Sequence record: MK250027.1
Length of the DNA: 64,000 nt
Reading direction: 5' to 3' (one strand)
The translations under genes and the position numbers were made by a program. This document shows positions 3,006 through 42,770 of the stretch, piece after piece (the first letter of the stretch is position 1; the number at the start of each line of letters is the position of its first letter). A model generated the notes under the pieces. That model saw only the letters and a list, made by a program, of their open reading frames with translations. It did no database searches and was not told the DNA's origin.

Positions 3006-3291
3006 ATGGAAAGATTATATAAAGAATTAATTAAAGATATATCAATAAGTGTAAAGTAGGCAATAGAAGAATCAATAGGTACATTACAAACTGATAATGA
3101 TATAGATATAATATATATATATACGTAATAATATTAATAATTTAGATTTAAGTGAGTTTAATTATGATATATTAAATTATCTGATACCTGATAAAGAAAC
3201 ATTAATTAATACAGTATTATGTAAAATGTCGGTATCTGACGAAACAATTAATAATATAATGTTATAGATAAAAAATAAGTGTAAAAAATAA
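3006..3291 (+). pseudogene. small TAG-recoded gene frameshifted in an (AT)6 run
   Basis: MERLYKELIKDISISVK(TAG)AIEE... reaches TAA at 3126; another frame continues to TAA 3289-3291; adding one AT unit at 3111-3122 would fuse them into 95 aa. Confidence 0.5.
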
Positions 3292-3346
3292 CTTTTTAAC
3301 ATTTTTAGATATATAATAAAAAGATTTTTTCGATTAAATAAGATTT

Positions 3347-5251
3347 ATGGTAAGCAAGAAGAGTTTAGAAAGTAAGTATCAAAGTATGTCGGAATTAGAT
3401 CATATCTTGAATAGATCAGGTATGTATATAGGTTCCGTAAAGAATGAGAATAAGCAAATGTTTTTATATTCATCAGATGATGCAAAGATGAAATTAGTTG
3501 ATGTTGAATATACACCAGCATTGTTAAAGATGTTGGATGAGATTATATCAAATTCATGTGATGAGTATAGAAGAATAGATAATATGGGATTGACAGAAAT
3601 GTCTGTTACCATTGATAAGCATGGACGAGTAATCGTAAGAGATAATGGTGGTATTCCTGTTGTTAAACATAAGGAAGCAGGAATTTATATTCCTGAATTT
3701 ATATTCTCACAACTAAGGACAAGTAGTAATTTTGATGATTCAGAAGATAGAGATGTAATAGGTACAAACGGTCTTGGTAGTAAAATTTGTAATATATTCT
3801 CTACGTTTTTTTCTATATATACAGCAGATAAGAAACATTCATATTATAGATCATGGAAGAATAACATGCGAGAAATGAATGATGATTTACAAGTTAAGAC
3901 CACGAAAGATCATTTTACAGAAAGTACATTTGACGTTGATTTTTCCAGATTTGAATGTGGTAATGAGTTCTCGGAAGATTTTATTAATATTATAGAAAAA
4001 CGTTGTATTGATGCAGCTGCCGCTAATATAGGTTTAACTGTTCATTTTAAATATACAAATGGTAATGATGTTGTTAGAGAATCTGAATGGCATTTTCGTG
4101 CATTTGATGAGTATATTGATTTATTTTCTGATTATGTAGATACAGAACAAATGTTGAAGTTTTCTGATTCTATCATGCAAGTTTGGGTATTTCCTGATAA
4201 TGGTATTAATGTTGGATTTGTGAATGGTGCTGAATGCTCAAGAGGAACACATATCAAAGCGGTTAGAAATGAAATTAATTCTGCTGTATCTGCATATCTT
4301 TTATCAAAAGAAAAAATTGATATTACGCCAAAGAATGTAGATGGAAAATATTCAATGTTCTGTACATTCCATGTTAATAATCCGTCTTATGATTCACAGA
4401 CAAAGGAATGTTTGACAACAGTAGTTGAAAGATTTTCAAATGATAATAAGTATACATTTAAGGTACCAGATTCATTTATTAAGTCTGTTTTGAAATCAGA
4501 GATTGTAGATATTGTAATAGATTGGTATAAACAAAAATGTGAAGTAGAGGATCAAAAAACATTAAGAAAACTTAATAGACAAGCTAAAGCGAAAATTCGT
4601 AATAATGATAAATTCATTGATGCAAATTCTAAAAGATCAGCTGATAGAGAGCTTTGGATATTCGAGGGTGATTCTGCACGCGCAGGATTTAGAGCAGCAA
4701 GAGACCCACAAACACAAGCAGCATATATGTTACGAGGAGTAATTCTTAATGTAATGGGACTTGCTCCAACAAAGATTATGGCAAATAAAGAGTTGTCTGA
4801 TTTATTTAATATCATCGGTTTACAATGGGGTGAACCTGTAGATGTGAAGAAATTGAATTTCAGTAAATTGGTTATAGCAACAGATGCTGATTTTGATGGT
4901 AGTAAAATCGCAGGTCTTCTTTTAACATTCTTTAATTTATGGCCAGAACTTTATGATGCAGGTTTAATTTGTAGATGTATTACACCTATTATTAAAGCTG
5001 TTAAAGGAAACGATGTTCAGAAATTTTATACGATGGATGAATTTAGGAAGAAAGAAAATTCATTGAAAGGATACAAGATAACATATTTAAAAGGTCTTGG
5101 CTCAAGTACGAATGAAGATTATAAGGATATGATGAGAAATTCTGTTCTTCATTTCTTTAAGAAAGATGAACTTTCTGATATGACTATTAAAACATGGTTT
5201 GGAAAGGGTATTGCAAAAGAGAGAAAATCATTACTTAAGAATGAAGTTTAA
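3347..5251 (+). CDS. DNA topoisomerase II large subunit (T4 gp39+gp60-like; GHKL ATPase + TOPRIM)
   Basis: LDEIISNSCDE, DNGGIP, GTNGLGSK ATPase motifs; EGDSA, DADFDG, YLKGLGS TOPRIM motifs. Confidence 0.95.
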   Translation: MVSKKSLESKYQSMSELDHILNRSGMYIGSVKNENKQMFLYSSDDAKMKLVDVEYTPALLKMLDEIISNSCDEYRRIDNMGLTEMSVTIDKHGRVIVRDNGGIPVVKHKEAGIYIPEFIFSQLRTSSNFDDSEDRDVIGTNGLGSKICNIFSTFFSIYTADKKHSYYRSWKNNMREMNDDLQVKTTKDHFTESTFDVDFSRFECGNEFSEDFINIIEKRCIDAAAANIGLTVHFKYTNGNDVVRESEWHFRAFDEYIDLFSDYVDTEQMLKFSDSIMQVWVFPDNGINVGFVNGAECSRGTHIKAVRNEINSAVSAYLLSKEKIDITPKNVDGKYSMFCTFHVNNPSYDSQTKECLTTVVERFSNDNKYTFKVPDSFIKSVLKSEIVDIVIDWYKQKCEVEDQKTLRKLNRQAKAKIRNNDKFIDANSKRSADRELWIFEGDSARAGFRAARDPQTQAAYMLRGVILNVMGLAPTKIMANKELSDLFNIIGLQWGEPVDVKKLNFSKLVIATDADFDGSKIAGLLLTFFNLWPELYDAGLICRCITPIIKAVKGNDVQKFYTMDEFRKKENSLKGYKITYLKGLGSSTNEDYKDMMRNSVLHFFKKDELSDMTIKTWFGKGIAKERKSLLKNEV

Positions 5252-5257
5252 TTATAT

Positions 5258-5298
5258 AATTCCATATGTTAATAAATTTTAAACATATGGAATTTTTT
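5258..5298 (+). terminator. intrinsic terminator
   Basis: AATTCCATATGTT / AACATATGGAATT 13-bp stem followed by a T run. Confidence 0.75.
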
Positions 5299-5315
5299 AT
5301 TATATAATAATGTGT

Positions 5316-5324
5316 GTATCTTTG
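5316..5324 (+). promoter_or_regulatory. GTATCTTTG promoter element
   Basis: TAnnTTTG match upstream of the 5358 start. Confidence 0.7.
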
Positions 5325-5357
5325 TGATAATATATAAAATTAAATAAAAAATAAATT

Positions 5358-6302
5358 ATGAATAAAGAATTATTAAAAGAAAATATATCGGAATCCGTTA
5401 AAGATATATTAAAGAAATATAATATTAGTGATATTAATGAATCAAATATATTAATATCTATAAATAATTGTATAGATAATATATTTGAAGGAATAGATAT
5501 AGATCAAAGAAAACGACTTGTATCATTTAATCCAAATCATCAGAATTATGTAGATACAAATGATCCATGGAATCCAAAACCTATATATAATGAAGTAGAA
5601 GGTTATAAGGTAATTTCAATATTTAAACGTAAAGAAACTGAAGATAAACATGATGGAAATCCTGTTATATATGCACTTAAAGATATAAGAGGATGGAAAT
5701 TTAAAAATCCATCATATGACATATTTGCATTATTACGTAGATTTGTTTCAGTAACAAAAGAGCTTAAAGAAAATTTTGATGTTATTATTACCACACCATC
5801 TTCTAATAAATTAAATACCGAAGTTTTATATAGAATAAGGAGACTTATAAATCATGAAACATCATATGAGGATTTCTTTTATAAATATGGTGCTAATGAT
5901 GTGTATGAAAATTTTCTTGATACTAATTATCTAGAAACACATTATAATGAAGATGAGCAGGAACATATACATGATTTATTATATGAAGCAATTTCTAATA
6001 TGATGAAACCTAAAGAAAACAAAGGTAATGATGGTATTTTTTCTTATAAATTTATACCCCAACAAGAATTACGAAAATGTATTATAAAATCATTAGGCAT
6101 TAATAAATTGTATAAAGATGAAATAACATATGGTAAGTATTTAAATGGTAAGAAAATACTGGTTATAGATGATACAGTCACATCGGGTAAAACCATATCT
6201 GATTCGGCGACAGCAATAAAAGATATGTATGATCCAGAATCTATAACATTTTTAACTTTATTTTCACCATTAGAACGAAATAAAAATAATTTAGAAAAAT
6301 GA
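5358..6302 (+). CDS. phosphoribosyltransferase-fold protein, paralog A (314 aa)
   Basis: [19 protein letters not shown]-binding loop; ITTPSS motif. Confidence 0.8.
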
Positions 6303-7177
6303 ATATTATAGATGGGAAATTAATATCAACTCAAATTAAAGAAGAAATAAAAAATGAAGTTGATAATATTATAAATAAAGGAGGACGACAACCACATCTT
6401 GTAGCAATAATAGTAGGTCATGATGGAGGATCTGAAACATATGTACGAAATAAAGTTAAAGCTTGTGAAGCATGTGGATTTAAAAGTACAGTATACCAAT
6501 ATGAAGATAATATATCAGAAGAAGATTTAATTAATAAAATTATATTATTAAATAATAATCCGAATGTAGATGGTTTTATAGTTCAACTTCCATTACCTAA
6601 ACATATTAATGAACAAAAAATAATTGAAACAATTGATTATAAAAAGGATGTAGATGGTTTTCATCCAATTAATGTAGGACGATTAAATATAGGTTTACCT
6701 TGTTATATATCAGCTACGCCAAAAGGTATTTTTGAATTATTGAAAAGATATAATATTGAAACAAAAGGAAAACATTGTGTTATTATTGGACGTAGTAATA
6801 TTGTTGGTAAACCTATGTCTACATTGATGGTTCAAAAACAATATGGAGATTCAACAGTAACAGTATGCCATTCACATACTGAGAATTTAAAGGAAATAAC
6901 AAAACATGCAGATATATTAATTGTAGCTCTTGGTAAACCTGAATTTGTAACTGCAGATATGATAAAAGAAAATGCAGTTGTTATTGATGTTGGTACAACA
7001 CGAATTCCTGATAATACAAAAAAGTCAGGATTTAGATTATGTGGAGATGTAAAATATAATGAAGTTGCACCGTTATGTAGTTATATTACACCTGTACCTG
7101 GAGGAGTCGGACCTATGACGATTGCAATGCTTATGCAAAATACATTATCTGCGTATAAACATGAAATATATGATTAA
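6299..7177 (+). CDS. folD: bifunctional methylenetetrahydrofolate dehydrogenase/cyclohydrolase
   Basis: [44 protein letters not shown] motifs. Confidence 0.97.
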
Positions 7178-7791: not shown

Positions 7792-9252
7792 TTAAATTAA
7801 TTTACCTTTTATAATATCTTCTTTGATAATATTAAACAATTTTTCTCCAAAAGCATTTAAATCTTTAACAACACATGTATAAACTGCATCATCTGAATCT
7901 CTATAAGCATATGCATTATCAGATATATATTTGTTCCTATATGTATCAGATGGTGAAAGTTTTGTTAAATTAATTAATACATCAGATTTATTCATATCTG
8001 AACTTCCAGACTGTAAATAACATTGTATAATAAATTTACGCACATCGGTATTATAATATAATGATTTAATAGCTCCACTCCAATCATTATAATTAACATT
8101 AATTAATTTATCAGGATTATTCTTTAATATTTGCTTAATATTTTCTTTTACCCATTCAAAATAATTAGAAGGATTACTATCCATATTATATTTAATTAAA
8201 GTTTCTTCACTATGTTCTGCATTTCCTGATTCATCTCCCGTTTGTTTATATTTAATATAAGGTTTAACGATATATAAAAATACTCCTTTTGAAAATAATT
8301 TTATTATATTAGGCTTATTTTCAAAATATCTACATGCAGTGAAATTATATTTAAATAAATTATTTCCATCAAATTTTTCATTGAAATCACGTCGTCTTGC
8401 ATCTGGTGCGAATGACGCAGCTTCATTATGAATAAAACAATCATATGAATTTTCCTTTATATCAATAGTTAAATATTGATAAAATGTATCCCAACCTCTT
8501 TTTCTAGTGCCTACATTTTCATAAATTTCAAATAATACATCATTTGTACTTTTAAATAATTTATTAAAATTAACAATATCATTTTGAAGTAAACTGATAA
8601 GTTTATCAAAGTTCTATCCAGATTTTCTAACTAAACTATTTACATATTTTTCAATATCTACTTCACATTTATCAAATGCTTTGTTATAACTACCAACAAA
8701 ACTGGTTTTTAAATCATTGCTATCATATAATGATACAGGTATATGTTGTATAAGTGAATCTAGTATTGTAATATATTTTTTATTAATAGGTGAACGTTTA
8801 GCACGTGGTTTTGAAACATTAGGAGTTGAAATTACAGGTTCAGTTACACGTGTTTTTCTAGAAACCGGTTGTTTTTGTACAGGTTCAGATGAAATACCCA
8901 TATTAATATTATATAGCTATTGAATTTCTTCTATAGTTCCACCCAAATCTAATATTCTGTGTCCAAATAATTTGAATACTTTAATTTTATCTATATCTCT
9001 TTCACTTTTTGGACATGGTTTTTTCATAATAATTAAAGCTGCAACATATCTGTTAAGTAAATCATCCTTAGTAAGTTTCTTCATAGGTTTTACCAACTCA
9101 CATTCAGTAGCTTTATTTCTTGAACAAACTGACGCAACACTTAACCATAATTTCCTATCTAATGTTCTATGGTCAATACGTTTTGCCATTTCATTTAATG
9201 ATTTCTTTAAACTATATGATATACCATTCATTAATTCTTTATATAATGACAT
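7792..9252 (-). CDS. TAG-recoded hypothetical protein (486 aa, 2 TAG)
   Basis: Three in-frame track ORFs (8917-9252, 8614-8901, 7792-8184) join across TAGs at 8917 and 8614; N-terminal domain paralogous to the 39832 gene. Confidence 0.8.
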
Positions 9253-9330
9253 TGTGTTTAATATTAAAACTTTTTATATTTATTTGTTTTAATAGTAAAG
9301 ACTTTATGTTTCCTAATTAATAAAATAAAT

Positions 9331-9366: not shown

Positions 9367-10293
9367 ATGACTAAAGATGAATTGAAAAATATTGTTTCCT
9401 CTGTTATGAGTGAAACTTTAAAAAAATATAATATTAATGAAATTGAAACAAATAATATGTTATTTTCATTAAATGAATATATGGATAATCATATGTTTGA
9501 AGGAATAGATGTAGATGATGAAAATCATATTGTTTCATTTAATCCTAATCATCAAGAATATGTAGATACAAATGATCATTGGAATCCAAAACCTATATAT
9601 AATGAAATAAATGGTTATAAGGTAATATCTATATTCAAACGAAAGGATACAGAAAATAATTTAGACGGTAATCCTTTAATTTATGCATTAAAAGGTCATA
9701 AATGGAAGTTTAAGAATCCATCATATGATATATTCGCGTTATTACGTAGATTCGTTGCAGTAACAAAAGAACTTAAAGAAACATATGATGTAATTATAAC
9801 AACACCATCATCTAATAAATTAAATACTGAAGTATTATATAAAGTTAGAAGGTTGATAAAACATGAAACTTCATATGAAGATTTCTTTATGAAGAATGAT
9901 GCTATTTATGTATATGAAGAATTATTGGATAATAATTGGATTGAAAAACATTATAATGAAAAAGATGCAAAACGAATAGATACTGAAATATATAGGGCTA
10001 TTTGTCGCATACAAAAATCAAAAGATAACGGAGGTAATGATGGTGTTTTTTCATATAAGTTTATACGAAATAAAGATGTAAGAAATGCAATAATTCAATC
10101 CATGAGTATAAATGATATGTATAAAGATGAAATAACATATGGTAAGTATTTAAATGGAAAGAAAATATTGGTTATAGATGATACAGTTACATCTGGTAAG
10201 ACTATATCTGATTCTGCTGAAGCAATTATTGAAACATATGCACCAGAATCTATAACATTCCTAACTTTATTTTCACCTTTAATGTCTGAATAA
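9367..10293 (+). CDS. phosphoribosyltransferase-fold protein, paralog B (308 aa)
   Basis: [15 protein letters not shown]; colinear with and highly similar to 5358-6302. Confidence 0.8.
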   Translation: MTKDELKNIVSSVMSETLKKYNINEIETNNMLFSLNEYMDNHMFEGIDVDDENHIVSFNPNHQEYVDTNDHWNPKPIYNEINGYKVISIFKRKDTENNLDGNPLIYALKGHKWKFKNPSYDIFALLRRFVAVTKELKETYDVIITTPSSNKLNTEVLYKVRRLIKHETSYEDFFMKNDAIYVYEELLDNNWIEKHYNEKDAKRIDTEIYRAICRIQKSKDNGGNDGVFSYKFIRNKDVRNAIIQSMSINDMYKDEITYGKYLNGKKILVIDDTVTSGKTISDSAEAIIETYAPESITFLTLFSPLMSE

Positions 10294-12670: not shown

Positions 12671-13843
12671 ATGGAAGAAAAACAATAGATAAATGATGAA
12701 TATATAATTTCTTTATTTTTCACATCAACTACAATGCCACATAGAATAAGATCATCATCCAATAAAATAATTGAAAATAATAATGATATAAAAAAATATT
12801 TGTTACATAGATTTAACGATTCTAATAATTGTAGTTATAAAGAAATACTTCATAGAATAAAATATAATATAGAAGAAAAACCTAAATGCCCAATTTGTGG
12901 AAAATATGTAAAATATTATGGTCTTTCAAATATGTTATATGGGAAAACATGTTCACGTAAATGTCAATACGAATATATGAAAACCGATGAATTTCAAAAT
13001 AAAATAGATCATTCATATATGAAAGATCCTAATATTATAAAAAGAATATAGGATAAACGAAAATTAAAAATGAATGAAATTAGAGAAAAGACAAAATAGA
13101 CTCTTTTTGTCAGATATGGTGATTCACATTATAATAATAGAAATAAATGTAAACAAACATTATTAGAAAAATATGGTGTTGATAATATAATGTAGTTAGA
13201 TTTTGTAAAAGATAAAATAAAGAAAACAAATTTGATTCGTTATGGTGTTGAATGGTCAGCACAAAATAAGCAAATAAATCAAAAAACAATAGATACACAA
13301 ATAAAAAAATATGGTGGTGTATTTAATCCAGAAAAAGTAAGAAAAACAAATATTGAAAAATATGGAGTGGAAAAACCATTTATGTCTGAAGAAATTCAAA
13401 ATAAAGTTGAAAATAAACGAGATATTATTCAAAAGAAAACTAATATAACAAAACGTTTAAGAGGTACATTTAATACATCAAAACCTGAAAATGAATCTAA
13501 AACTTTATTAGAAAATAAATTTGGCATTAATAATGTATTAACTCAATATAAAACCGAATTATATCCATTTTATTGTGACTTTTATGTCAAATCATTAAAT
13601 TTATATATAGAATGTAATTATCATTGGACACATGGTGGTCATGTATTTAATGAAAATGATTTAAATGATATAGAAAAACTTAATAAATGGAAAAATAAAA
13701 ATACAAAATTTTATAATACAGCAATAGATGTTTGGACTGTAAGAGATCCATTAAAAATAAAAACCGCATATGATAATAATTTAAATTATAAAACTTTTTA
13801 TTCTTTAGATGAATTAAAACAATATTTAGAAAATACATTATAA
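12671..13843 (+). CDS. TAG-recoded homing-endonuclease-like protein (390 aa, 4 TAG): Zn module, KYGV repeats, PD-(D/E)XK/DUF559-like nuclease
   Basis: ATG 12671 is in frame with track ORFs at 12734 and 13232; CPICGK...CSRKC; repeated T...KYGV; FYCDFYVKSLNLYIECNYHWTHG. Confidence 0.75.
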
Positions 13844-13868: not shown

Positions 13869-15293
13869 ATGAAAGTAACAACAAAGAAAGTTAAAGGTTT
13901 AGACGCACATATTATTGAAGATAGTAATAAGAAAGTAGTAAGAACTATAACAGATTTTTTAAATACAGATTATAAGGATTATACAAAATATGTAATTGCA
14001 ACAAGAGCATTGCCAAGTCTTCTTGATGGATTCAAAGTTGGTGCTAGAAAGATTATGCATGCTGCTTTCCATGGAGGTATGAAAAATGGGTCTGAGATCA
14101 AGAATTTGAATTTGGTTGGCGATGTTTATAATTTAACATTATATCAACATGGTGACGCGAGTTTGGTAAATACAATGTTTACAATGTCTGCAGAGTTCCG
14201 TGATAACCTGCATCCTATTACCATAACTGGTCAACATGGTTCGTTACGTGATGAAAAAGCTGTTTCAGCTCCACGTTATCTTTATTGTAAGTTATCACCA
14301 TATGCAAAACTTTATAAAGTAGATGAAGATCTTCTTGAATATGTTTTTGATGAAGGTACTTATCTTGAACCAGTAAATTATTGGCCTATTATTCCTACAG
14401 TTATTACTGCACGTGCAGAAGGTATGGCACCAGGTTATAAATTCAGTTCATTTTCTTATAACCCTATTGATATTATCGACGCATGTACAGAAGTATTGAA
14501 TACTGGAGATATTAAAGAAACTATTATTAGACCTTATGTTAGAGGTATTGAAGAAGATAGATTTACATTTGATAAAGATGCTGGTAAATGGTTGAATTCA
14601 GGTGTATATAAGGTAGATATTAAGAATGATATATTTCAGGTAACAGATCTTCCATATGATATGGGATTTGATAAGTTTGAAAAGAAACTTAATGATATGG
14701 TAGAAAAAGGTTATCTTAAGGATTGGAAGAATTATTCTCAGGATGATAAGTTGAATTATTGGCTAATATTTCCAAAGAAACAACTTGAACGTGAAATGAA
14801 ACCAGATCGTAAAGATAAACTTTTTAAGAAGATTGGACTATATACATATGTACCAGATGATTTACTTTATGTTTTGGATGAACACAAGAAGGTAAAACAT
14901 TTTATCAATAAGGAAGAACTTATTAAATATTTTGTTAATATTCGTCTTAACAAATATAATGATAGAAAAGACAGATTAGTTTCTGTTATGGAAAAGCGTT
15001 ATGAAGAAAATAATAATATTTGTAAGTTTATAGAATTAGTTAATAGTGGTGAATTAGTTATTTCTAATAGGAAGAGAAAAGATGTAAAAGAAGATTTGAA
15101 GAAATATAATTTACCTGAAACTGTATTACAAATTCAGATTTCTAAGTTAACTGATGAAGAGAAGAAAGAATTGATTAAGAAGAATAAGGAGATTGAAAAA
15201 GAACTTAAGTATATTAAGAAAACAACTATTAAGGACATGTATCTTAATGATTTAAGTGAATTGAGAAAATCTCTTGAAAATGATTTTAAATAA
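13869..15293 (+). CDS. DNA topoisomerase II medium subunit (T4 gp52-like)
   Basis: RALPSLLDGFKVGARK, YQHGDASL, APRY catalytic Tyr, EGMAPGY. Confidence 0.93.
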   Translation: MKVTTKKVKGLDAHIIEDSNKKVVRTITDFLNTDYKDYTKYVIATRALPSLLDGFKVGARKIMHAAFHGGMKNGSEIKNLNLVGDVYNLTLYQHGDASLVNTMFTMSAEFRDNLHPITITGQHGSLRDEKAVSAPRYLYCKLSPYAKLYKVDEDLLEYVFDEGTYLEPVNYWPIIPTVITARAEGMAPGYKFSSFSYNPIDIIDACTEVLNTGDIKETIIRPYVRGIEEDRFTFDKDAGKWLNSGVYKVDIKNDIFQVTDLPYDMGFDKFEKKLNDMVEKGYLKDWKNYSQDDKLNYWLIFPKKQLEREMKPDRKDKLFKKIGLYTYVPDDLLYVLDEHKKVKHFINKEELIKYFVNIRLNKYNDRKDRLVSVMEKRYEENNNICKFIELVNSGELVISNRKRKDVKEDLKKYNLPETVLQIQISKLTDEEKKELIKKNKEIEKELKYIKKTTIKDMYLNDLSELRKSLENDFK

Positions 15294-16057
15294 TGATAGA
15301 TAATCTTTTTGATGATGATATTTTAATTGGTGATGATTCATCTTCTGTATTTAATGATACAGGAGTTGAATCATTAACTAATTTAATAGGTAATAATATT
15401 ACGGAACTTAAGAAAAATTCATATCTTAATATGAGAGGAACTAATTATGATGTATGGAGAGTATATCTTAATGAGACAAAAGGAAGATACCATGATGGAT
15501 ATTGGAATAGTTTTTCATATAATGTAAATGATCCTTATAATGTTACATTAAAAATTAAATCATTAAATGGATTTAAATTTCATAATAGACAAACAAATTA
15601 TAGATTAGGTATTTTAGACATTAATTTATTTAGATGCATTCCATATATACAGAAGATAGAATTAGAGCCTATATATGAAGATAGAACAATATTTAATGAT
15701 ATTATCTTTATGAATATGTTAAATAACAATAAACATAAAGATAATAATATGATAGATAAATCATTTGTTGATAATTTACAATGGTTAGAAGAAATACGAA
15801 ATGAATATCAAATAAAGAATAATATATCACAGTATATAGTATTTCAAGGATGTGTATTTGATGTTGATGCAATTCAATATTTAAATGATAATATTCCAGA
15901 TAATTTTGATATTATCATAACTTCAGACTGTGATATATTTATGAATGATGAATATATAAATGTTTTTAGATTACCATTGATGTTTAATACTAATTTTGAT
16001 TGGAATACATGTAATAAAATATCATTATATAGAGAACCTATATTTAAAATTCATTAA
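15293..16057 (+). CDS. hypothetical protein with N-terminal LFDDD acidic patch (254 aa)
   Basis: ORF track. Confidence 0.7.
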   Translation: MIDNLFDDDILIGDDSSSVFNDTGVESLTNLIGNNITELKKNSYLNMRGTNYDVWRVYLNETKGRYHDGYWNSFSYNVNDPYNVTLKIKSLNGFKFHNRQTNYRLGILDINLFRCIPYIQKIELEPIYEDRTIFNDIIFMNMLNNNKHKDNNMIDKSFVDNLQWLEEIRNEYQIKNNISQYIVFQGCVFDVDAIQYLNDNIPDNFDIIITSDCDIFMNDEYINVFRLPLMFNTNFDWNTCNKISLYREPIFKIH

Positions 16058-21988: not shown

Positions 21989-23059
21989 TTAAAACTAATC
22001 CTTATATGCATTATATGTAGCAATTACATCTTTAAGATGAATATCAGGGAATAATTGTAATTTTTTCAATACCTATATATAATCCTATCTATTATAATAT
22101 ATATTTCTAGATATTCTATAAGGATTCTTTCCAGTTATAACAGATATTAGAATATCGTCATTAAATGAAAGTTGCATATCTTTATAATCTCTATTCTTCG
22201 CACATATAAATAAAGCAGCAAGTCTCGCAACCATTTTATCAGGATTTGTTATCTTATCAAAACCACTATACTTACCGGTCATTAAGCATTTATCCATACG
22301 ATCAATGTCTTTCTATGTAACTTTATATACTTTACCTGTACATGTTAATTCATCAGCAAGTCTCTTTGTGCTAAATATAGTTTCAACTTGTCCTTTTAAT
22401 GCAATACTAATTTCATTAATTTTCTTATTTACATTTGAAAACTATTCTTGATTAATCTTATCAATAACTTTATTAATAGGCGCATTTTTATCTTTATCAC
22501 CTGGTCGGCGTAAAGGCGTTGATGGATATTTAATTAATTTCCATATAACTTTATAATCTGTTCCAAAATTATTAAATACAACAGCCCATGATTTTAATAC
22601 TTTTTCTTTATTTCTATATGTAATAGTATAAGGTTCCTATTTAATTGTAAATTCAATTTTTTTACTCTATTCCGAACCTATATAACATATAAAATAATAT
22701 ACTTCCTGAAATTTTCCTGTTTCTGGATCAATAACTGAATTACGGTTAATTATAACCATTTTATTTTTATCAGATAATTTATCTTTATCCATCTTTGATG
22801 CCCAAAAGAAACCATTATCCGTACATCTATCTATTTCATTCATAACAGCTACTACTGTATTGATTACCTAATTATTTAAATCGTATTTATTAATAAAATA
22901 TTCATTTACCTCTTCTTGATTATCACACTATCCTAACGATGTTATCTTTGTAGCATTTGAAATTAATTCAGATGTTTTATTTGATGCATCATCATTATAT
23001 AAATCATCAAATTCATCATCAAATAAACTTTCCAATAAAAGTTTGATATTCTTGTTCAT
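21989..23059 (-). CDS. TAG-recoded hypothetical protein (356 aa, 9 TAG)
   Basis: ATG 23059 MNKNIKLLLESLFDDEF..., in frame with track ORF 22085-22297, ends TAA 21989. Confidence 0.78.
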
Positions 23060-30615: not shown

Positions 30616-30713
30616 GGTTATGTTACATAATGGTTAATGAGGTATCTAATTGATATTTTAATATCAATGGAAGAAAGGTATTGCGGTGACGGGTTCGAGT
30701 CCCTCCATAACCA
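30616..30713 (+). tRNA. tRNA-like gene with a hairpin insertion in the anticodon loop (anticodon not assignable)
   Basis: GGTTATG/CATAACC acceptor stem; CAT-AATGGTTA-ATG D arm; GGG-TTCGAGT-CCC T arm; 30-nt loop containing TTGATATT/AATATCAA. Confidence 0.55.
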
Positions 30714-30934
30714 CTCCTTATAATAATGAAAAGGATGCAATTATCTAACATAGATATTATTATAGTATAAGAAATTATGATAATTCTTAAAATGATAATC
30801 AAGAGATTGAAGTAACTAATTAATGTATAGTTACTAAGGCGAAAGTATAACTGCAATTATATTAGTAGTTGGCGTTTAAAAGATTGAAGAAAATTATTTG
30901 CAGATAATTTTTGGATTGATATTAAATGTAAAAA

Positions 30935-31026
30935 TTATAATAGTGTAGCGGGAATGCACGTTCGATGATAAATCGGAAAGGGATTAACGGTATGACGTTA
31001 TTAAGGGTTCGACTCCCTCTTATAAA
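30935..31026 (+). tRNA. atypical class II tRNA-like element (long variable arm, non-canonical anticodon loop)
   Basis: TTATAA/TTATAA acceptor; GTGT/GCAC D stem; TTCGA-TGATAAA-TCGGA; TAACG/CGTTA variable hairpin; AGGG-TTCGACT-CCCT T arm. Confidence 0.5.
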
Positions 31027-31033
31027 CAAATTT

Positions 31034-31848: not shown

Positions 31849-33006
31849 ATGAGTAAGAATATAGGAATTTGTTTTGGCGGATATTGTCCAATGCATCAAG
31901 GTCATCTTGATGTTATTATGCGAGCAAAGAAAGAATCAGATATTGTTTATGTTGTTGTATGTGGATATACAGATGAACCACGTGCGAATGAAATAGGTTT
32001 GAATATAAAGCAACGAGAACGACTTATTAGAGAATATTTTAAAGGCGATGAGATTATAAAAGTTGTTACTGTTAATGATACAGAATTAGGTATTGATGAA
32101 AGTATGTCTGAACATAATTGGAAAGTATGGACTGATTATGTGAAGAAACTTATTGTTAACAAAGTTTTAGACCATAAAGATAATTGGCCTTTTACAGTAG
32201 ACGATACTATTAACGCATTTGAGTTGAAACTTACTTTTTATGTTGGCGAGAAGTTTTATGTTAAATCATTAGAGAAATTAAATTATAATGTTGTATTGGT
32301 AGGATATGACAGCAATTCACCTTCTAACAGAAGTAATGATATTTCTGCAACTCTTATACGTCAGAGACCACAACTTTACTGGAATAAGATTGTATCTACA
32401 TTCAAACCAAAACTAACAAAGAAGATTCTTGTATTAGGAACAGCATCAGAAGGCAAATCAACTCTTGTAAAAGATATTGGTAATTATTTTCAGGTTCCAT
32501 ATACTACTGAATTTGGTAGGGATTATATGGCGAAACATTGTATGTTAGATCCAGATATTACAGTAAACGATTTTGTTGAATTCCTTATAGGACAAAGACA
32601 ATATTATTTTGATGCACTTAACAGTGATAAGAATAAAGGTGTTATTATTTCTGATACTGATAATCTCGTTACTCTTATGTATGCGAAGGCATATACAATG
32701 GATAAGAACATGCAGATTACTGAAAAAGAATATAATGATATATTGTTACCACTTGCAAAATCATTGCAGACTAATGTAGATTGGGATGTAATTTATCTTA
32801 TCAAACCACATAATACATTTGTCGATGATGGAACACGTTATATGGAGCAAAGTTCTATTGAAGAACGTATAAAAAATTATCATATTCTTGTTAAATTATT
32901 GGAGGACTTTGATTTACTTCATAAGGTTATAGAACTAGATGGTACATATCTTGAGCATTTTGATTATGTAAAGAATTATATAAATACACTCTATGAAAAG
33001 TATTAA
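31849..33006 (+). CDS. nadR: NadR-like NMN adenylyltransferase / ribosylnicotinamide kinase (no HTH domain)
   Basis: GGYCPMHQGH (HxGH), ISATLIR, P-loop GTASEGKST, EFGR, DTDNLVT, FVDDGTR. Confidence 0.9.
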   Translation: MSKNIGICFGGYCPMHQGHLDVIMRAKKESDIVYVVVCGYTDEPRANEIGLNIKQRERLIREYFKGDEIIKVVTVNDTELGIDESMSEHNWKVWTDYVKKLIVNKVLDHKDNWPFTVDDTINAFELKLTFYVGEKFYVKSLEKLNYNVVLVGYDSNSPSNRSNDISATLIRQRPQLYWNKIVSTFKPKLTKKILVLGTASEGKSTLVKDIGNYFQVPYTTEFGRDYMAKHCMLDPDITVNDFVEFLIGQRQYYFDALNSDKNKGVIISDTDNLVTLMYAKAYTMDKNMQITEKEYNDILLPLAKSLQTNVDWDVIYLIKPHNTFVDDGTRYMEQSSIEERIKNYHILVKLLEDFDLLHKVIELDGTYLEHFDYVKNYINTLYEKY

Positions 33007-33655
33007 TAATATTTTATATACAGAGTTTATAAAAGGAAGAAACATATTTGAACATATGTTTCTTCTTGTAGGTATAATATTACAATTTATTGTATATTAT
33101 ATTACAAACGATACAATGATTTCATTAATATCTGGAGTAACAGGTATTATATCTGTTGTATTATGTTCACAGAGAAAAATTTCATTTTATTTCTTTGGAT
33201 TTATACAATTATTTACTTATATGTATTTAGCATGGCAGCAGAAATTTTATGGTGAATTAGTAGAAAATATATTCTATATAATTACCATGATTATAGGTAT
33301 TGTTACATGGTTAACGAATTATAATAAGGATGAACAAATAGTAGAATCTAAAAGACTTTCTAATATACAGTTAAGTATAATAAGTAGTATAATGATTTTA
33401 TTGTGTATTTTATTTGGGTATTATATGAGTAATTATACAGATAATACACAACCATATATGGATGCTTTTTCTACAATACCGGCATTTATAGCACAAACAT
33501 TATTGATGATGAGATATAGGGAACAATGGATATTTTGGATTATAATTGATATTGTATCTATATTCATGTGGGGAATTGTAGGGAATTGGATAATGGTTAT
33601 ACAATTCATATTTTGGACGTTAAATTGTTTATACGGTTATATAAAATGGAAATAA
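32993..33655 (+). CDS. pnuC: PnuC-family nicotinamide riboside/vitamin transporter
   Basis: Multi-TM; PYMDAFST, AQTLLMMRYREQWIFWIIIDI; overlaps nadR. Confidence 0.9.
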   Translation: MKSINNILYTEFIKGRNIFEHMFLLVGIILQFIVYYITNDTMISLISGVTGIISVVLCSQRKISFYFFGFIQLFTYMYLAWQQKFYGELVENIFYIITMIIGIVTWLTNYNKDEQIVESKRLSNIQLSIISSIMILLCILFGYYMSNYTDNTQPYMDAFSTIPAFIAQTLLMMRYREQWIFWIIIDIVSIFMWGIVGNWIMVIQFIFWTLNCLYGYIKWK

Positions 33656-35360: not shown

Positions 35361-36425
35361 ATGAATAAATTAATTAAGAAATTAATGGAGGGATTATTTG
35401 ATGATTTTGATGATGAAATTTTATCAAATTCAGATAATTCAAATAATGTATCTCAATAGATAATTGAAACGGAAGATAAACCTAAAATTAAAGAATGGTT
35501 GTTAGATAATATTATTTGTAAATATGGAACACCATTTAAATGTGATGAAGGTAATGATATTGAATATACATTTGAATCAGATGGATTACATTGTAATTTA
35601 AAATTTAATGTACAAGATGCAAAATTTATGAATTCTATTCCAGATTATGTTAAAATTAATAAAATAACTTGTAATACTGTAGAATTTGCAGACTTTATTA
35701 ATTTACCTAAAGAAATAGATGGGACATTAAATATAAAAGGATGTAAGGAAAAAGATTTAAATGTACAATTACCAGAGAAATTAGGTGTATTATCGCTTAT
35801 TAATTGTAAAATACGTTCATTGAAAGGATTAAGTAATACATGTAAATCAATAGAGCATCTTTGTATAGAAAATTGTAATATGTTTACTTCATTTAATGGG
35901 ATTCCAGATAATGTTGGATTTATATAGTTAATTAAATGTAAGAAAATAGTAGATTTAGAAGGAATTCCAGATACAGTAGAGAGAATTGTATTAGTTTCAT
36001 TACCTTCATTTGAAAGTTTAAAAGGATGTCCAAATAAATTAAGTAATGGATTGTATATATAGGAGTGTCCATATTTAACCACATTAGCTTATTGTCCATC
36101 ATTAATAATGGACCAATGTGAAATACATGATTGTATGTTATATCAGTTAGATATGAAAAATACAAGAATTTGTGGTACATTTAAATTAAGTAATAATAAT
36201 TTATCAGATTTAGAAAATGGACCAAAACAGATAGACGGATCATATATAGTTTCGGAACCGTATTTAGCAAAATTTAAAGCTAATGAAACTATTATGACAA
36301 ATGCGTATAATAATGCGGAATTTATATATCAAGTTAGGAAAAAATATTTTAAAGGAAATAAAAATGACATGCCATAGATGAACAATGGTGTAAAAATTGT
36401 ATGTCAATATTTAGAAGATCTCTAA
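35361..36425 (+). CDS. TAG-recoded leucine-rich-repeat-like protein (354 aa, 4 TAG)
   Basis: Joins track ORFs 35499 and 36108; repeats SLKGL, SFNGIP, DLEGIP, SLKGCP, DLENGP. Confidence 0.8.
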
Positions 36426-37294: not shown

Positions 37295-37437
37295 AATTTA
37301 TTAAAATTAAATGTTAATGTTAAATCTAAATTTTTTAATTACTTAATGTATATGATAAGTATAAGAAAAAGTCTATTATAAATAGAATAAAATATAAAAT
37401 ATTAAAGTAAATAATGATTAATAACAAATAGAATTTA

Positions 37438-38571
37438 ATGGATGATATATTAGATGCAATATCAAAAGGATTAAAAGAAAGTTTAAATATAGAAGAGCAA
37501 ATCCATCCATATAATGGTGTTTTAACGGATATAAGAGATTACGAATCTGTATTTCATTCTCCAAATTTTGAATTATATAAATTAAATGAAAAATATCATG
37601 AAGTATGTATATCTCAATAGATATTAAATAATATTATAAAAATAATTAAAGATAATAAAAATAATTTAGGAAAAGACATATATACAAATTATTGCTTTAA
37701 AATATATAAAGTTAATAATCATAAAACATATAAAATATATAAATCAATTAATATTAATAAAGATCACCCTATATATGTAAATTTATATTCTAATAAAAGT
37801 AATGTATATGGTAAAACAGAAAATAGACTTATATCTAATGATATAAATTTAGATAATGATCATATAAGAATATATATAAATGTTTATTATATTAATATGG
37901 AAAAATTTATATATTCTGTATTAAAACATGAATTAACACATGTTGTTGAAATGTATTCTGCTAAAAAGTTTAATAATATTAATAATTTAAAAAATACTAT
38001 AGGAATTGATAAGGATAATGATATAATGTTAGATATAAATCCATTAGCAAAAAATATGTTAAATAGGATGGTTTACTTATTTTCTAATACTGAACATAAT
38101 GCACACATAAATGGTTTAGCTGAATTTATCAATAAATTATCACCAACAGAAATAAAAAAATATACAAAATATATACAACATGAAGATGATGATGAAAATA
38201 TTAAAGTAATTAATAATATAAATAATCCTATATATAATTTTATGAGAAATTATGATGATTTAGATATATTAACAAATTATCAGGAATTTGAAGATTATAT
38301 GTTTGATTTAAAAAGTTATTTAGAAAACAATGATTTATTACCAATTTTTTATTTAGGTTATTTATTATAGAAACATCATTTAATATATAACAAAACTTAG
38401 ATAAATTGGGATTTTATTAAAAATTATATGGATAAAAAATATAAAAATTATAGTAAATATCATAATATTGCTGTATAGATAGTAAGTTTCTATGATTATA
38501 AAATAAAACAATATAGAGAAGACATATATAAAATAATATATAAGAAATTTAAAGAAAAGAAAATTATTTAA
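37438..38571 (+). CDS. TAG-recoded zincin-like metallopeptidase (377 aa, 4 TAG)
   Basis: Joins track ORFs 37438 and 37897; HELTH (HExxH) with downstream EHNAH. Confidence 0.7.
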
Positions 38572-38573
38572 TC

Positions 38574-39098
38574 ATGATAACAGTAAATAAATCAATAGAT
38601 ATAAATAAGGAATCATATCCTAAATGTCCATATACAAATGGCTTTTGTGAACCGAATATATTATACAATGATTACTCTATTATTAAAAAAGATAAATGTT
38701 TAACATGTGAACATTGGAGAACTAATTACGATTATATTCTTAATAAATCTTTAGAGTCTGCAAAGAAAAATAAGAAATCAAATTATAATCTTATTGTTAA
38801 TGAGGTAAACAGAGACGGTGGAAAATATATAAAGTTTGATAGCGATGACATAGGGTTTCTTATATGTGCGACGTCTACAATAGAAGATTATTATTATGTT
38901 TACATGGATAAAGATAAAAATATAAAGATGTCTTCATGCGTAGGTGGATATGAAGTTATAAAGTCTTCAGAAATACCACAGAATCTCTCTGTATTGAGTT
39001 ATATTCGTCAACATGATAAATTATATATAAAAGAAATTATAACGCGATACATAAAGAATTTGAAGTATGATAAGGTAATTACGAAAATATTTTACTAA
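38574..39098 (+). CDS. hypothetical protein (174 aa)
   Basis: ORF track. Confidence 0.7.
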   Translation: MITVNKSIDINKESYPKCPYTNGFCEPNILYNDYSIIKKDKCLTCEHWRTNYDYILNKSLESAKKNKKSNYNLIVNEVNRDGGKYIKFDSDDIGFLICATSTIEDYYYVYMDKDKNIKMSSCVGGYEVIKSSEIPQNLSVLSYIRQHDKLYIKEIITRYIKNLKYDKVITKIFY

Positions 39099-39148
39099 AA
39101 ACAAATTAACCATTATTTTATATAACATATAAACATTTAATATAGTTT

Positions 39149-39496
39149 ATGTCTAATATAGAAAAAGGAAGAAAAGAAATTATAGATAGATATTCTCCAG
39201 ATATTACAAACAGTATGACTCATGTTTTGGAAAATATCTATAATGCTGGATGGCATGCAGGCAGGAAAGCAGAACGAGAGAAATGGAGTAAATGCGAATA
39301 TCTCATGATTGCTCCTGAAAAAATGGAGAAGATTAAACAAATATGTGAAAATCCACCATGTAAAAATTGTAAATGTAAAACAATGGATAGACTAACAGGA
39401 TGTTTAGCAAATCCTCAAACATGTGAAGAATATCAAGAATATTCTTTAGTTTGTGAATTAATTAAATATTTTAAAACATGTGCATATAAATCATAA
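39149..39496 (+). CDS. Cys-rich hypothetical protein (115 aa)
   Basis: ORF track. Confidence 0.7.
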   Translation: MSNIEKGRKEIIDRYSPDITNSMTHVLENIYNAGWHAGRKAEREKWSKCEYLMIAPEKMEKIKQICENPPCKNCKCKTMDRLTGCLANPQTCEEYQEYSLVCELIKYFKTCAYKS

Positions 39497-39564
39497 GACT
39501 TTATTTTGGAATTTCATTATAATATGTAAAATAATAAACTAATAAATTTTACATAATAATTAAT

Positions 39565-39732
39565 ATGAAACAGATTAAAACTAATCAATTCAATTCCGAT
39601 AAAGTACAGGTAAAGATGCCTTGGACTGTTTATGATAACTATAATATAAAGAAAGATCCAAAGGTAACAATAGGTGTTCCTATTAATGAAAATTTGAAAC
39701 TAATAGATACTGATAAAACAATTTGGTATTAA
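39565..39732 (+). CDS. small hypothetical protein (55 aa)
   Basis: MKQIKTNQFNSDKVQVKMPW..., read manually. Confidence 0.55.
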   Translation: MKQIKTNQFNSDKVQVKMPWTVYDNYNIKKDPKVTIGVPINENLKLIDTDKTIWY

Positions 39733-39740
39733 TAGATATA

Positions 39741-39780
39741 AAAAAGTCTGAATTATATATGATTATAATTCAGACTTTTT
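39741..39780 (+). terminator. intrinsic terminator
   Basis: AAAAAGTCTGAATTATA / TATAATTCAGACTTTTT. Confidence 0.8.
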
Positions 39781-39831
39781 ATTTTATTTATATATGTAAA
39801 ATAAATAATATAATAATTTATTATATTAAAA

Positions 39832-41457
39832 ATGAATCAAAAATTATATAGAAGTTTAATTGAAAGTATAGGTATTGCTATTAAGAAATCAATAAATGAA
39901 ATGGCAAGACTTTCTGTATAGAGAACCATAGATAAGAAACTTTGGTTAAGCGTAGCATCTACATGTTCTAGAAATAAATCAACAGAAGCAGAGAATATTA
40001 AACCAGGTAAAGGAGATAAAGATAATCTTCTCAATAGATATGTTGCAGCTCTTATTATAATGAGAAAACCATGTCCATAGTCTGAAGATGATATTGATGA
40101 TATTAAAACATTTAAATTGGTAGGACATAAGTATTTAGAATTAGGTGGTACTATTGAAGAAATTCAAGCTTTATATAATAAAAATACAGGAAAACCTTCT
40201 ACTAATAATACATCTACAAAAAAGCAAGTTGAAGCAAAAGATAATACGGAAAACAATAAAGGTTTTGATAATGCAGTAGAATAGAAAACATCTGGAGGCG
40301 GATTATTCGACGATGATGATATATTTGGAGACGATGAAGTTAATAGAGCATTAACATCTGACTTACAAAAAAAGATTTTAGATCTACCAAAAGAAACATC
40401 ATTAGAAAATGTATTAATGTAGAGTATAGGTATTACAAAACCACGTGGATGGAAATATATCAAACATACAAATGAAGAATATGATAAATTTGTATTTAAT
40501 ATGAGTGGTACAAGCATAACACCAGAATACACATGGAATTATCCTAAATATTTGAAAGATTTCATAAACCTTATAAACAGTAAAGGATGGAAATTATATA
40601 AGGTTGAAGCACCGTCTTTATTCGGTTATTATAGATTTGAAAATATGACACCTGCATAGGTAAAACAATAGATACAATACGCATGTGAATCAAGATATAA
40701 ACTTGGTAGAGACTTAACAGAAACTATAGATAACCGCTTTAAAGAATATGAAGATTTTATAAATAAACGTAGAAAGGACATATAGACATTCGATAATGAT
40801 TTTGTAAAACAAATGTTTGAATCTGATGAGAATGTATATAGAGTGTTTTTATCGCCTGATGAAGGACTTATGCTGACATGTACAAGACCTATACCAGTAA
40901 ATGTATCATATGGTAATTCAAATATTTCAAAAAATTATTATACTAATTATACAGAATGGATATGGACTGTAACATTTACAGGAAATGTAAATGATTATGA
41001 TGAAAAAGATAAAACAGATATAAAAAAATTAAAGGAAGATAATAAGAAATATAATAAGCGCAAAAAAATATTTAGAACATTATTAGATAAACGATGTGGC
41101 TTGTCAGGATTTAAGTGGACAGTGTTTAATGATGGTAATGGTTATCCTATAATGGTTAAGATATGTAGTAAAGGATCATGTAAGATTACATATGATAACT
41201 TTACAAAAAAATATTATAATCCTTATACAAGTAAATCTAGTTATTATTATATACCTACAGATGATAAGACATTTCCTAATTCATTTAAGGAGGCTGTTTA
41301 GAATAAAGAACATTGGGGTGTATCATTGGTGAAATTAGTATGTTGTAATAATGACGGGAAATATGGTCATTCCCTATATGGTGGAAGTGATGATGAAGCA
41401 TATATGATTATAATGCCTACATATTATGGTAAAGCCATGATTGATTCTCTATTATAA
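39832..41457 (+). CDS. TAG-recoded modular hypothetical protein (541 aa, 8 TAG)
   Basis: ATG 39832 in frame with track ORF 40813; N-terminus paralogous to the 9252 gene, central KPRGWKY similar to the 17867 gene. Confidence 0.8.
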
Positions 41458-41506
41458 TGAATACAAATAAATATATATGAATTAAAATATAATTTTTAAT
41501 AATAAA

Positions 41507-41923
41507 ATGAAAGTTAGTGAAAAGAAGAAATTATATGAGTCTATCATGATGAATGTATCAAAGATAGTTAAGAAAAAATTAAATGAATATGGCGATGGTA
41601 TCGAGCAGGATGTTGATCCAGATGATGATATTACTGTATATGTTCCTTTGATTGGTTGTGAATGCACTGTTATTCCTTGTTATGATGAGGAAACAGGTGG
41701 AACATTCTACGAGGTTCATGATGATAATGATGAATATGTATGTGAGATTCATGATGATGTGGATACATCAGATGAAGACGCATTGGTAGATGCTATTGAG
41801 GACAATTACCAATGGGAATCAAAATCAGGTGATTATGAAAATGTTGATCCATTAGGTCCTGATGATTCTGATGTAGATGATGAGTTCGATACTTATGAAG
41901 AAGACGAAGATTATGATGTTTAA
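41507..41923 (+). CDS. acidic protein with LYES...KKLNE leader (138 aa)
   Basis: ORF track. Confidence 0.8.
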   Translation: MKVSEKKKLYESIMMNVSKIVKKKLNEYGDGIEQDVDPDDDITVYVPLIGCECTVIPCYDEETGGTFYEVHDDNDEYVCEIHDDVDTSDEDALVDAIEDNYQWESKSGDYENVDPLGPDDSDVDDEFDTYEEDEDYDV

Positions 41924-41926
41924 TAA

Positions 41927-42280
41927 ATGAAAAGAATTATTAATATAAGACCATTATCAGAAAATACAATAAGGAAATCTTTTGGTACTTCATTAGAAGA
42001 TAAACTGAGAGAATTAAGAGATGAAGTAAAGGATAGTAGATTACTTGAAGATACTTTAGTATTTCAGATAGGTAGGGAAGTATATACAGATAATGGTACA
42101 AGATATAAATTATTGGGAGGTCATCTATCATACCAGGAAATGGGATTAACATAGATGGACCAACAGTTATATAGTAATATTGTTTCAGGTAAAACTGATG
42201 TTGATACAGTGCTATATAACTGGAAGAATAAAAAGGTTAAAAAATTGAACTTTTCTTCAAGAAAAACATAGAAAAAGTAA
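41927..42280 (+). CDS. TAG-recoded hypothetical protein (117 aa, 2 TAG)
   Basis: Track ORF 41927-42154 extended through TAG to TAA 42278. Confidence 0.7.
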
Positions 42281-42283
42281 AAT

Positions 42284-42326
42284 AAAATGGTGAATATTTA
42301 ATTTTATGTTAAATATTCACCATTTT
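42284..42326. terminator. bidirectional terminator
   Basis: AAAATGGTGAATATTTAA / TTAAATATTCACCATTTT. Confidence 0.8.
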
Positions 42327-42328
42327 TA

Positions 42329-42770
42329 TTAATATGTAGATAATTCTTGTGTAAATGTACTTAATGCATCATCTATAGATGAAAACTCTCCAAATGATAC
42401 TTCTGTATCAGGATCAGAAAATACTTCAAATTCGAAATCTATTTTATCAACAGGGCCAACGGCTAATGTATATGTTCCATTATTATTCTATTGAATAGTT
42501 AAATGACTATTTTCTCCTCCACAAAAATCATCGAATTTCTATTGTAAATTATAATTATTTGCAAATATTCTCAATAATGATTCTGGTTCTCTATGTGTAC
42601 CTTTTGAACCTCTCATAATTCTAACTTCAGATGAATTAAAATATGATAAAATTATTTTCTTTAAATTATTTAATAGGTATATTAGAGTTTTCATTAAGCG
42701 TTCTTTTTACAGTTTTTGAAACAGATTTCATTATAGATTCATAAAGTGATTTCTTTTGATTTTTATTCAT
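42329..42770 (-). pseudogene. leader-bearing gene split by a frame change (34-aa leader ORF + 121-aa TAG-recoded ORF)
   Basis: MNKNQKKSLYESIMKSVSKTVKRTLNE... stops at 42666; overlapping frame from ATG 42694 runs to TAA 42329 with 2 TAG. Confidence 0.5.

Follow-up and report, generated by a model that had tools for sequence, protein, structure and literature searches.

A shared N-terminal leader on diverse proteins of Prevotella phage Lak-B8: a candidate capsid-targeting propeptide of Lak megaphages

Lak phages are among the largest phages known and are common in human and animal guts, yet they have never been cultured, and a role has been assigned to only a minority of their genes. The first 64 kb of one of them, Prevotella phage Lak-B8 (MK250027.1; full genome 551,627 bp), raises a question of its own. 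Here, in the 64,000 nucleotides referred to as the window, several seemingly different proteins begin with the same short basic stretch ending in Asn-Glu or a close variant. A first-pass annotation had noticed this leader at five sites, and more loosely at three others, and had suggested that it is a capsid-targeting sequence (CTS) comparable to that of phage T4, loading diverse cargo into the head for injection. The analysis described below favors this kind of explanation: with a probability of about 0.6, the leader is a capsid-targeting (prohead-core-targeting) propeptide of Lak megaphages that would function like the T4 CTS.

The genetic code must be considered before any of these genes can be read. 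The window has a G+C content of 26%, and many of its long frames are broken solely by TAG under the standard code. Since Lak phages use TAG for Gln (Devoto et al. 2019, PMC6784885), all frames were translated accordingly, and genes were called as simple longest open reading frames (ORFs) under that code. Genome-wide scans were run on the window joined to the Lak-B8 sequence from base 64001 to the end. A hidden Markov model (HMM) of the leader was built from the five strong window sites, iterated once, and run on the six-frame translation of Lak-B8.

All five strong sites are present where they had been described, each at the first ATG after a stop codon. The leaders of the window, the cargo part of one of them, and a looser site that proved not to belong are as follows.

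3006–3128, plus strand: remnant of a leader gene, now an ORF of 40 aa, with TAG read as Gln at codon 18; leader ending IEE; 38.7 bits.
9190–9252, minus strand: 21-aa leader ending LNE, at the start of an intact 486-aa gene (7792–9252) that is a paralogue of 39832–41457; 36.7 bits.
37414–37497, plus strand: probable diverged leader ending LNIEE, at the start of a 385-aa gene (37414–38571) with 5 TAG codons and ATAAATA 36 nt upstream; 3 bits, not significant.
39832–39900, plus strand: 23-aa leader ending INE, at the start of an intact 541-aa gene (39832–41457) with 8 in-frame TAG codons; 38.7 bits.
39833–41457, plus strand: cargo part of the preceding gene, comprising a conserved helical domain of ~100 aa, a disordered acidic linker with LFDDDDIF, and a variable C-terminal domain.
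41507–41587, plus strand: 27-aa leader ending LNE, at the start of a 138-aa gene (41507–41923) whose mature part is 39% Asp plus Glu, with an isoelectric point (pI) of 4.05; 50.7 bits.
42690–42770, minus strand: 27-aa leader ending LNE in a broken gene, with the leader in a 34-aa ORF (42666–42770) and the remainder in another frame (ORF 42329–42694); 62.7 bits.
5358–6302, plus strand: looser site, not a member, with a paralogue at 9367–10293; both genes are TAG-free and have a weakly phosphoribosyltransferase-like C-terminus (weak phrog_8995 match).

The proteins that carry these leaders had been called unrelated, and this holds in part. The leader is a module on cargo that is mostly unlinked by BLAST, but the 9252 and 39832 proteins are not unrelated, because they are paralogues: they are ~69% identical over the 100 aa past the leader, diverge beyond it, and have a third paralogue at 108627. 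Two further sites are remains of genes. The orthologue of the 3006 gene is 318 aa long in Lak-A1, Lak-C1, and G002 (an IMG/VR genome), and Lak-B8 retains residues 1–31 only; the Gln in its leader is a TAG, a sense codon in this window. The 42770 gene has suffered a 5-nt deletion relative to the IMG/VR loci L020 and L029, in both of which the gene is in frame but carries TAA at codon 5. Among close relatives, the match of Lak-B1, B3–B6, and B9 to the window ends at ~42922, a synteny break beside this broken gene. Window bases 39000–46000 are 100% identical to Lak-B8 at the same coordinates and match Lak-B2 as well.

The looser sites divide. The leader of the 37414 gene, which had been placed at 37438, is probably a diverged member, judging from in-register matches at hydrophobic positions 0, 4, 5, 8, 12, and 16 plus S9, K10, K13, and N17. 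The other two, at 5358 and 9367, were rejected: they score 2–4 bits, their NE is out of register, they are paralogues of one another, and they are preceded by an early-type TATCTTTG box and not by ATAAATA.

Is the leader more than a chance resemblance among a few N-termini? The six-frame scan of Lak-B8 returned 16 matches of 35–66 bits (E <= 6e-9), with the next best at 15 bits and noise below 12 bits. Thirteen of the 16 copies begin at the first ATG, and in the copy at 317836 the start ATG has turned into ATA. A second profile, made from 150 database sequences and scored over Lak-B8 genes, placed 14 matches of at least 23 bits within the N-terminal 45 residues of genes (30.8k in total) versus 2 in the remaining 137.6k residues, a 4.5-fold larger space. 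Together with the six-frame scan and the database search described below, this excludes chance. Lak-A1, Lak-C1, and G002 each hold 13–14 leader matches. A half-leader on a phosphoheptose-isomerase-like protein (Lak-B8 237682–238179), at 11 bits, was set aside as a probable chance match.

The leader is also widespread beyond these genomes. A profile of five sequences, the window copies only, was searched at E <= 1e-3 against 1.84 billion representatives of 50% identity clusters (1.84e9 proteins) and matched 366 of them, nearly all from residue 1. Members that were sampled are metagenome proteins on phage-like, partly TAG-recoded contigs. A degenerate DNA pattern of the core likewise found 18 true copies, all in IMG/VR, with a G+C content of 23–29%, on contigs of 158–554 kb in nearly all cases and of 20 kb in one; a 19th match, on a 35-kb contig (L018) with a GC of 0.53, was dismissed as chance. 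No published description of the leader was found; in the Lak literature that was searched, a protease or an N-terminal motif goes unmentioned, and no relevant paper of the searched literature contains the string LYESIM.

The consensus is M-x4-KK-x-LYESIMKSVSKTVKKxLNE, with a leader length of 20–27 residues. Statistics per position, for residues P2 and P3 (those preceding the final Glu), and for cargo grouping refer to the 150 representatives listed among the 366 matches. Every one of these 150 fits the pattern [LIVMF][YF]-x14-[LIMV]-x-E with zero indels. Information amounts to 3–4 bits per position from L0 to E18 and, immediately past the Glu, falls from 3.7 to below 0.75 bits. The Glu is invariant, the residue before it is Asn in 92%, and P3 is Leu (82%), Ile (16%), or Met (2%). 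The [LIMV]-x-E end and the collapse of conservation after the Glu are what was expected of a site with the specificity of the T4 prohead protease, gp21.

At what level is this conservation maintained? Across the 13 ATG-started copies of Lak-B8, codons vary synonymously, with Leu as TTA, CTT, or TTG, Ser as AGT or TCN, and Ile as ATA, ATT, or ATC, so selection acts on the peptide and not on DNA or RNA. Orthologous leaders of other Lak clades have many residues changed and keep the pattern. For example, the leader of a sigma factor reads TLYESIMRNVSKTIRKKLNE in Lak-B8 versus ALYNSLMEGISRSLRNTLNE in Lak-A1, and what the two retain are the hydrophobic positions 0, 1, 4, 5, 8, 12, and 16 plus LNE. 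One could suppose instead that the likeness was simply inherited within one expanded and diverged gene family, or that it marks a nucleotide-level element such as a translation start region or a recombination site, with no common peptide function. It is true that some carriers are paralogues and that leader genes have an upstream box in common. Synonymous variation nevertheless rules out a nucleotide-level constraint; the carriers include sigma-70 and T4-type lysozyme domains with independent histories; and paralogues do not decay in a single step at one residue, as all 150 listed sequences do. This explanation is therefore highly improbable.

The leader had been called an amphipathic helix, and this description is borne out. 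The helical hydrophobic moment of its core is 0.45, compared with 0.21 for shuffled sequences, and the net charge is +5. In an AlphaFold 2 (AF2) model of a relative 48% identical to the 39832 protein, residues 3–26 form a helix, and a low-confidence stretch at 24–29 follows the Glu (residue 23), ahead of the first folded domain. A Sec, Tat, or lipoprotein signal peptide was ruled out, as there is no uninterrupted hydrophobic core, ~7 Lys or Arg are spread along the leader, mean hydrophobicity is -0.2, and the helical pattern is amphipathic. The conserved LYE that opens the helix also fits L-x-E and, speculatively, might be a second cut site.

If the leader is a propeptide, the phage should encode an enzyme to remove it, and such an enzyme is apparent. 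T4 gp21 belongs to phrog_207, and the genome's one phrog_207 match (9e-37 and 8e-30) is a 581-aa protein with four TAG codons at Lak-B8 498148–499893 on the minus strand. A database protein identical to it carries PF03420. Two of its motifs, LGELDHP and VSSR, line up with their counterparts in T4 gp21 and contain a conserved His and a conserved Ser that we take to be the catalytic residues. The protein also has an LNE at residues 19–21. T4 gp21 trims nine residues off its own N-terminus (PMC9958956), and by its sequence this segment ends in LIE. Altogether, the Lak protease contains six [LIV]NE sites versus 1.0 expected (P = 6e-4). Four of them lie within residues 176–230, just past the protease domain (P ~3e-6, for a window chosen post hoc), and one LNE|S aligns with ITE|S in T4 gp21. 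A complex prediction of the full protease with leader residues 1–45 of the 41507 protein gave a score of 0.00 and was counted neither for nor against binding.

The second partner to be expected is a capsid protein with the same cut site, since the leader end had been said to match an LNE of the major capsid protein. This protein is encoded in the window itself.

54828–56831, minus strand: major capsid protein of the T4 gp23 family, 667 aa; phrog_138 match at 1.9e-25, and PF07068 on near-identical proteins.

T4 gp23 also belongs to phrog_138. Residues 61–64 of the Lak protein (nt 56640–56651) are KLNE, which is predicted from its sequence to be the maturation site. T4 gp23 has LTE at residues 63–65 and loses 65 residues on maturation (PMC9958956). 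The two cut sites are not directly alignable, because a BLASTP alignment of the two proteins starts only at Lak residue 122 and T4 residue 93. The four residues that end the leader thus recur in the capsid protein, at a position like that cut in T4, and several times in the protease itself, where one would expect self-processing. A 455-aa protein encoded just upstream of the capsid gene region (58250–59617, minus strand) matches phrog_850, annotated as an RNA-binding protein, at 3e-44.

These results bear on another explanation, in which the leader is a docking or oligomerization helix that stays on the protein, is left uncut by the prohead protease, and serves some other partner such as a tail or baseplate part, DNA, a replication compartment, or a chaperone. 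An amphipathic basic helix would suit such a role, leader cleavage is itself a prediction from sequence, and a related class of N-termini (described below) ends in LFDD and not in LNE. Moreover, one conserved leader-like copy is C-terminal and ends in LQLI, so it cannot be removed at a Glu. This copy (~205642–205722) is the C-terminus of a 450-aa protein at Lak-B8 204373–205725 (plus strand), where the helix ALYESIMSKVAKTIKRKLQLI is followed directly by the stop codon; it is kept in Lak-A1, Lak-C1, and G002, also without NE. A plain docking helix, however, needs neither an invariant Glu, nor an Asn in 92% of sequences, nor conservation that stops exactly at the Glu. It would not account for the xNE motif in the capsid protein and its clustering in the protease, or for the flexible break directly after the Glu in the AF2 model. 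A retained helix is thus considered unlikely.

When would leader proteins be made? The ATAAATA box occurs 26–40 nt upstream of 13 of the 13 ATG-started leader genes versus 21% of all genes, and genome-wide it forms a sharp peak 30–40 nt upstream of starts. In the window, the boxes are located as follows.

39801–39807, plus strand: ATAAATA box, 31 nt upstream of the 39832 ATG.
2980–2986, plus strand: ATAAATA box of the 3006 leader.
9277–9283, minus strand: ATAAATA box of the 9252 leader.
41467–41473, plus strand: ATAAATA box of the 41507 leader.
42803–42809, minus strand: ATAAATA box of the 42770 leader.
37378–37384, plus strand: ATAAATA box of the 37414 probable leader.

Anywhere within 100 nt upstream, ATAAATA is found in 100 of 218 TAG-containing genes versus 51 of 356 TAG-free genes. 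The TATCTTTG box shows the opposite bias and lies 30–60 nt upstream of 45 of the 356 TAG-free genes versus 2 of the 218 TAG-containing ones. ATAAATA, which precedes the 39832 gene, resembles the T4 late promoter TATAAATA, and TATCTTTG, which precedes 5358 and 9367, resembles the Bacteroidetes -7 element TAnnTTTG. Structural genes of Lak phages lie in TAG-rich regions (Devoto et al., PMC6784885). Since ATAAATA favors TAG-containing genes and structural genes are TAG-rich, the leader genes are assigned to a late-type class; 5358 and 9367, judged by their box, fall in an early-type class.

The cargo behind the leader is diverse. A BLAST comparison of the mature parts in Lak-B8 linked one three-member family and one weak pair and left the others unlinked. 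At least 50 aa follow the Glu in 101 of the 150 listed representatives, and these 101 form 77 groups unlinked by BLAST. Compared with PHROGs and NCBIfam, the 150 gave five single-member PHROG matches and zero NCBIfam matches. The three-member family of ~500-aa proteins had no family match and no Foldseek match in the PDB at E <= 0.001 (AF2 model, mean predicted local distance difference test score 59). Two carriers can be named. The protein at Lak-B8 199564–200577 (minus strand) is a sigma-70-family factor (phrog_351, 2e-42; TIGR02997, 3e-35) and the genome's only such match, while that at 203133–204347 (plus strand) has a C-terminal T4-lysozyme-like domain (phrog_7, 2e-11; PDB T4 lysozyme, 4e-4). 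Both resemble, by analogy, protein types known to be ejected by phages. The other carriers are for the most part small, acidic proteins. In Bacillus, pro-sigma-E and pro-sigma-K are sigma-70-family factors with an N-terminal extension of ~20–27 residues that is removed by a dedicated protease. The Lak leader is not a sigma-specific regulatory device of this sort, because the same extension is found on dozens of unrelated proteins.

Leader genes also turn over rapidly, as the relics, the frameshift, and the lost start codon indicate; the loci of T4 internal proteins do so as well (PMC3012670). This matters for a further explanation, namely that the small acidic leader proteins serve, as T4 gp67, gp68, and gp22 do, as throw-away parts of the scaffolding core: the leader would bring them there, the protease would degrade and expel them, and they would not reach the host. 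In T4, gp21 cuts core proteins to small peptides (PMC9958956), the Lak cargo is mostly acidic, and a coiled-coil protein adjoining the protease (Lak-B8 503241–504494) has a weakly leader-like N-terminus ending in LSE. In contrast, 77 unrelated groups among 101, with quick turnover and breakage, point to dispensable, fast-evolving functions and not to conserved assembly parts, and neither a sigma factor nor a lysozyme domain is scaffold-like. Disposal of the leader proteins as a class is accordingly given a low probability, somewhat below that of a retained helix.

The capsid-targeting propeptide can now be outlined as a sequence of events. A short basic preamble leads into an amphipathic helix of 19 residues with a net basic charge, LY-x2-[IL][MI]-x2-[VI][SA]K-x-[VI]K-x2-[LI]NE. 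Late in infection, this helix would dock the tagged protein on the assembling head core. After closure of the shell, the gp21-family protease would cut [LI]-N-E behind its invariant Glu; the capsid protein and the protease itself would be cut at this motif too. The mature cargo would then remain in the head and probably be delivered with the DNA at the next infection. A bolder version holds that one universal 27-residue tag fills the capsid with a large, fast-changing set of proteins, and that the only sigma-70-type factor and dozens of small acidic effectors would enter Prevotella with the DNA; this version is tentative, and doubted more than believed.

Several observations weigh against the propeptide. 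Docking, cleavage, retention in the virion, and injection are steps that we infer from sequence. T4 internal proteins are basic, unlike the Lak cargo, which is mostly acidic (median mature pI 4.6; pI <5 in 63% versus 21% of the proteome). Because acidic proteins fit less easily into a DNA-filled head, some members may be parts of the core that are degraded. TAG codons, typical of late genes, are absent from seven short leader genes. One leader copy lies inside a 487-aa TAG-read-through frame, with its own promoter box ~40 nt upstream, and the C-terminal copy ending in LQLI has no NE. The capsid site offers no test by variation, as the 120 listed homologues are ~95% identical with a nearly invariant N-terminus. 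Finally, the Lak leader, at 20–27 residues versus ~10, is longer than the T4 CTS and shows by eye, with no alignment statistic, no evident similarity to it. On the other side, every testable sequence-level prediction of the T4 analogy held; what did not stand in the first-pass annotation was part of its site list, with two relics, two paralogues, and two looser sites of the early class.

How does the leader compare with known systems? In T4, a CTS is all that the diverse internal proteins have in common; it takes them into the scaffolding core, and gp21 then cuts it off (PMC3012670, PMC5694885, PMC9958956). The T4 CTS, MKTYQEFIAE, was confirmed on ipII and ipIII. As in T4 IPI–III and Alt, the Lak leader is a short, conserved N-terminal propeptide candidate on diverse proteins, ending in (L/I)-x-E. 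Like Lak-B8, T4 has a PF03420 protease and a gp23-family capsid protein with this kind of motif ~64–65 residues in, and its cargo set, like that of Lak, evolves fast and is dispensable. By eye, the two leaders have at most a Y-polar-polar-hydrophobic-hydrophobic pattern in common. In Lak, Asn occupies P2 almost without exception, each genome has ~14 carriers, cargo clusters number in the hundreds across the clade, and the mostly acidic cargo includes a sigma factor; the Lak features are read from sequence. Given its different and longer sequence, its Asn at P2, and its far more numerous and acidic carriers, the Lak leader is classed as working like the CTS and not as its homologue.

The phiKZ-like giant phages (phiKZ, 201phi2-1, and SPN3US) also have a T4-related prohead protease that cuts after Glu (PMC5694885). 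The N-terminal propeptides of their head and ejection proteins are believed to direct proteins into the prohead, and some paralogues have N-termini in common (PMC5694885). In contrast to Lak, their P3 is small (A/S/G-x-E), the propeptides are often >100 residues long, and there is no single module (PMC5694885); the Lak P3 is Leu, Ile, Met, or Val in 150 of 150 listed sequences, on a uniform module, so the phiKZ-type motif does not apply. In phage P1, the Dar anti-restriction proteins form an anti-defense set that enters the capsid during assembly and is delivered with the DNA (PMC9024508, PMC12810830); their incorporation is reported to be hierarchical, via DarA and Hdf partners and not one common leader.

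Certain other N-termini of Lak-B8 recall the leader. A second signature, M-x-K-x-I-x2-L-[LM]-E-S-LFDD[DE] followed by an acidic run, starts proteins at the following places.

15293–16057, plus strand: second signature.
16743–17867, minus strand: second signature.
21989–23059, minus strand: second signature.
35361–36425, plus strand: second signature.
501288–502763 of Lak-B8, minus strand: second signature, adjoining the protease.

It occurs internally in 39832–41457 as well. Ten of the 16 proteome sites of [LIMF]F[DE]3 lie within the first 21 residues, mostly in larger, TAG-rich proteins, several with ATAAATA. The protein at 277297–278811 has an LYE-leader-like start with LFDDE in place of LNE, and the LFDD and LNE classes may be related. 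Two proteins start with the tail of the leader only: MKRKLNE at 83252 (minus strand; gene 81045–83252, 735 aa), with a late-type box, and MKKSLNE at 493854 (minus strand; gene 493165–493854, 229 aa), with an early-type box. The 735-aa protein could carry a minimal propeptide.

The rest of the window holds further features of note. By eye alone, the N-termini of four plus-strand genes recall a type II topoisomerase subunit (3347–5251), FolD (6299–7177), a TonB-dependent receptor with a signal peptide (23990–26044), and NadR/PnuC (31849–33655). A 390-aa ORF with four TAG codons at 12671–13843 (plus strand) matches homing endonuclease families (phrog_3339, 2e-21). ARAGORN found no CTA suppressor tRNA in the window and called two unusually long tRNA genes, Ile-GAT (30616–30714, plus strand, 99 nt) and Tyr with anticodon ATA (30934–31027, plus strand, 94 nt), which may contain introns or be miscalls. 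A run of 21 N is present at 54135–54155, within the ORF 53084–54781.

If the leader is a capsid address, then the proteins that enter the capsid, and probably the host, could be told by sequence alone: ~14 in each genome and, across the clade, hundreds of cargo clusters. On the bolder version, the injected proteome of an uncultivated half-megabase phage could be read from its sequence. A capsid address would supply a concrete list of candidate host-takeover and anti-defense proteins, the testable prediction of a sigma factor delivered by the virion, and [LI]-N-E as the defined motif at which the Lak prohead protease cuts. The tag would also be a possible handle for packaging foreign proteins, as has been done with the T4 CTS.

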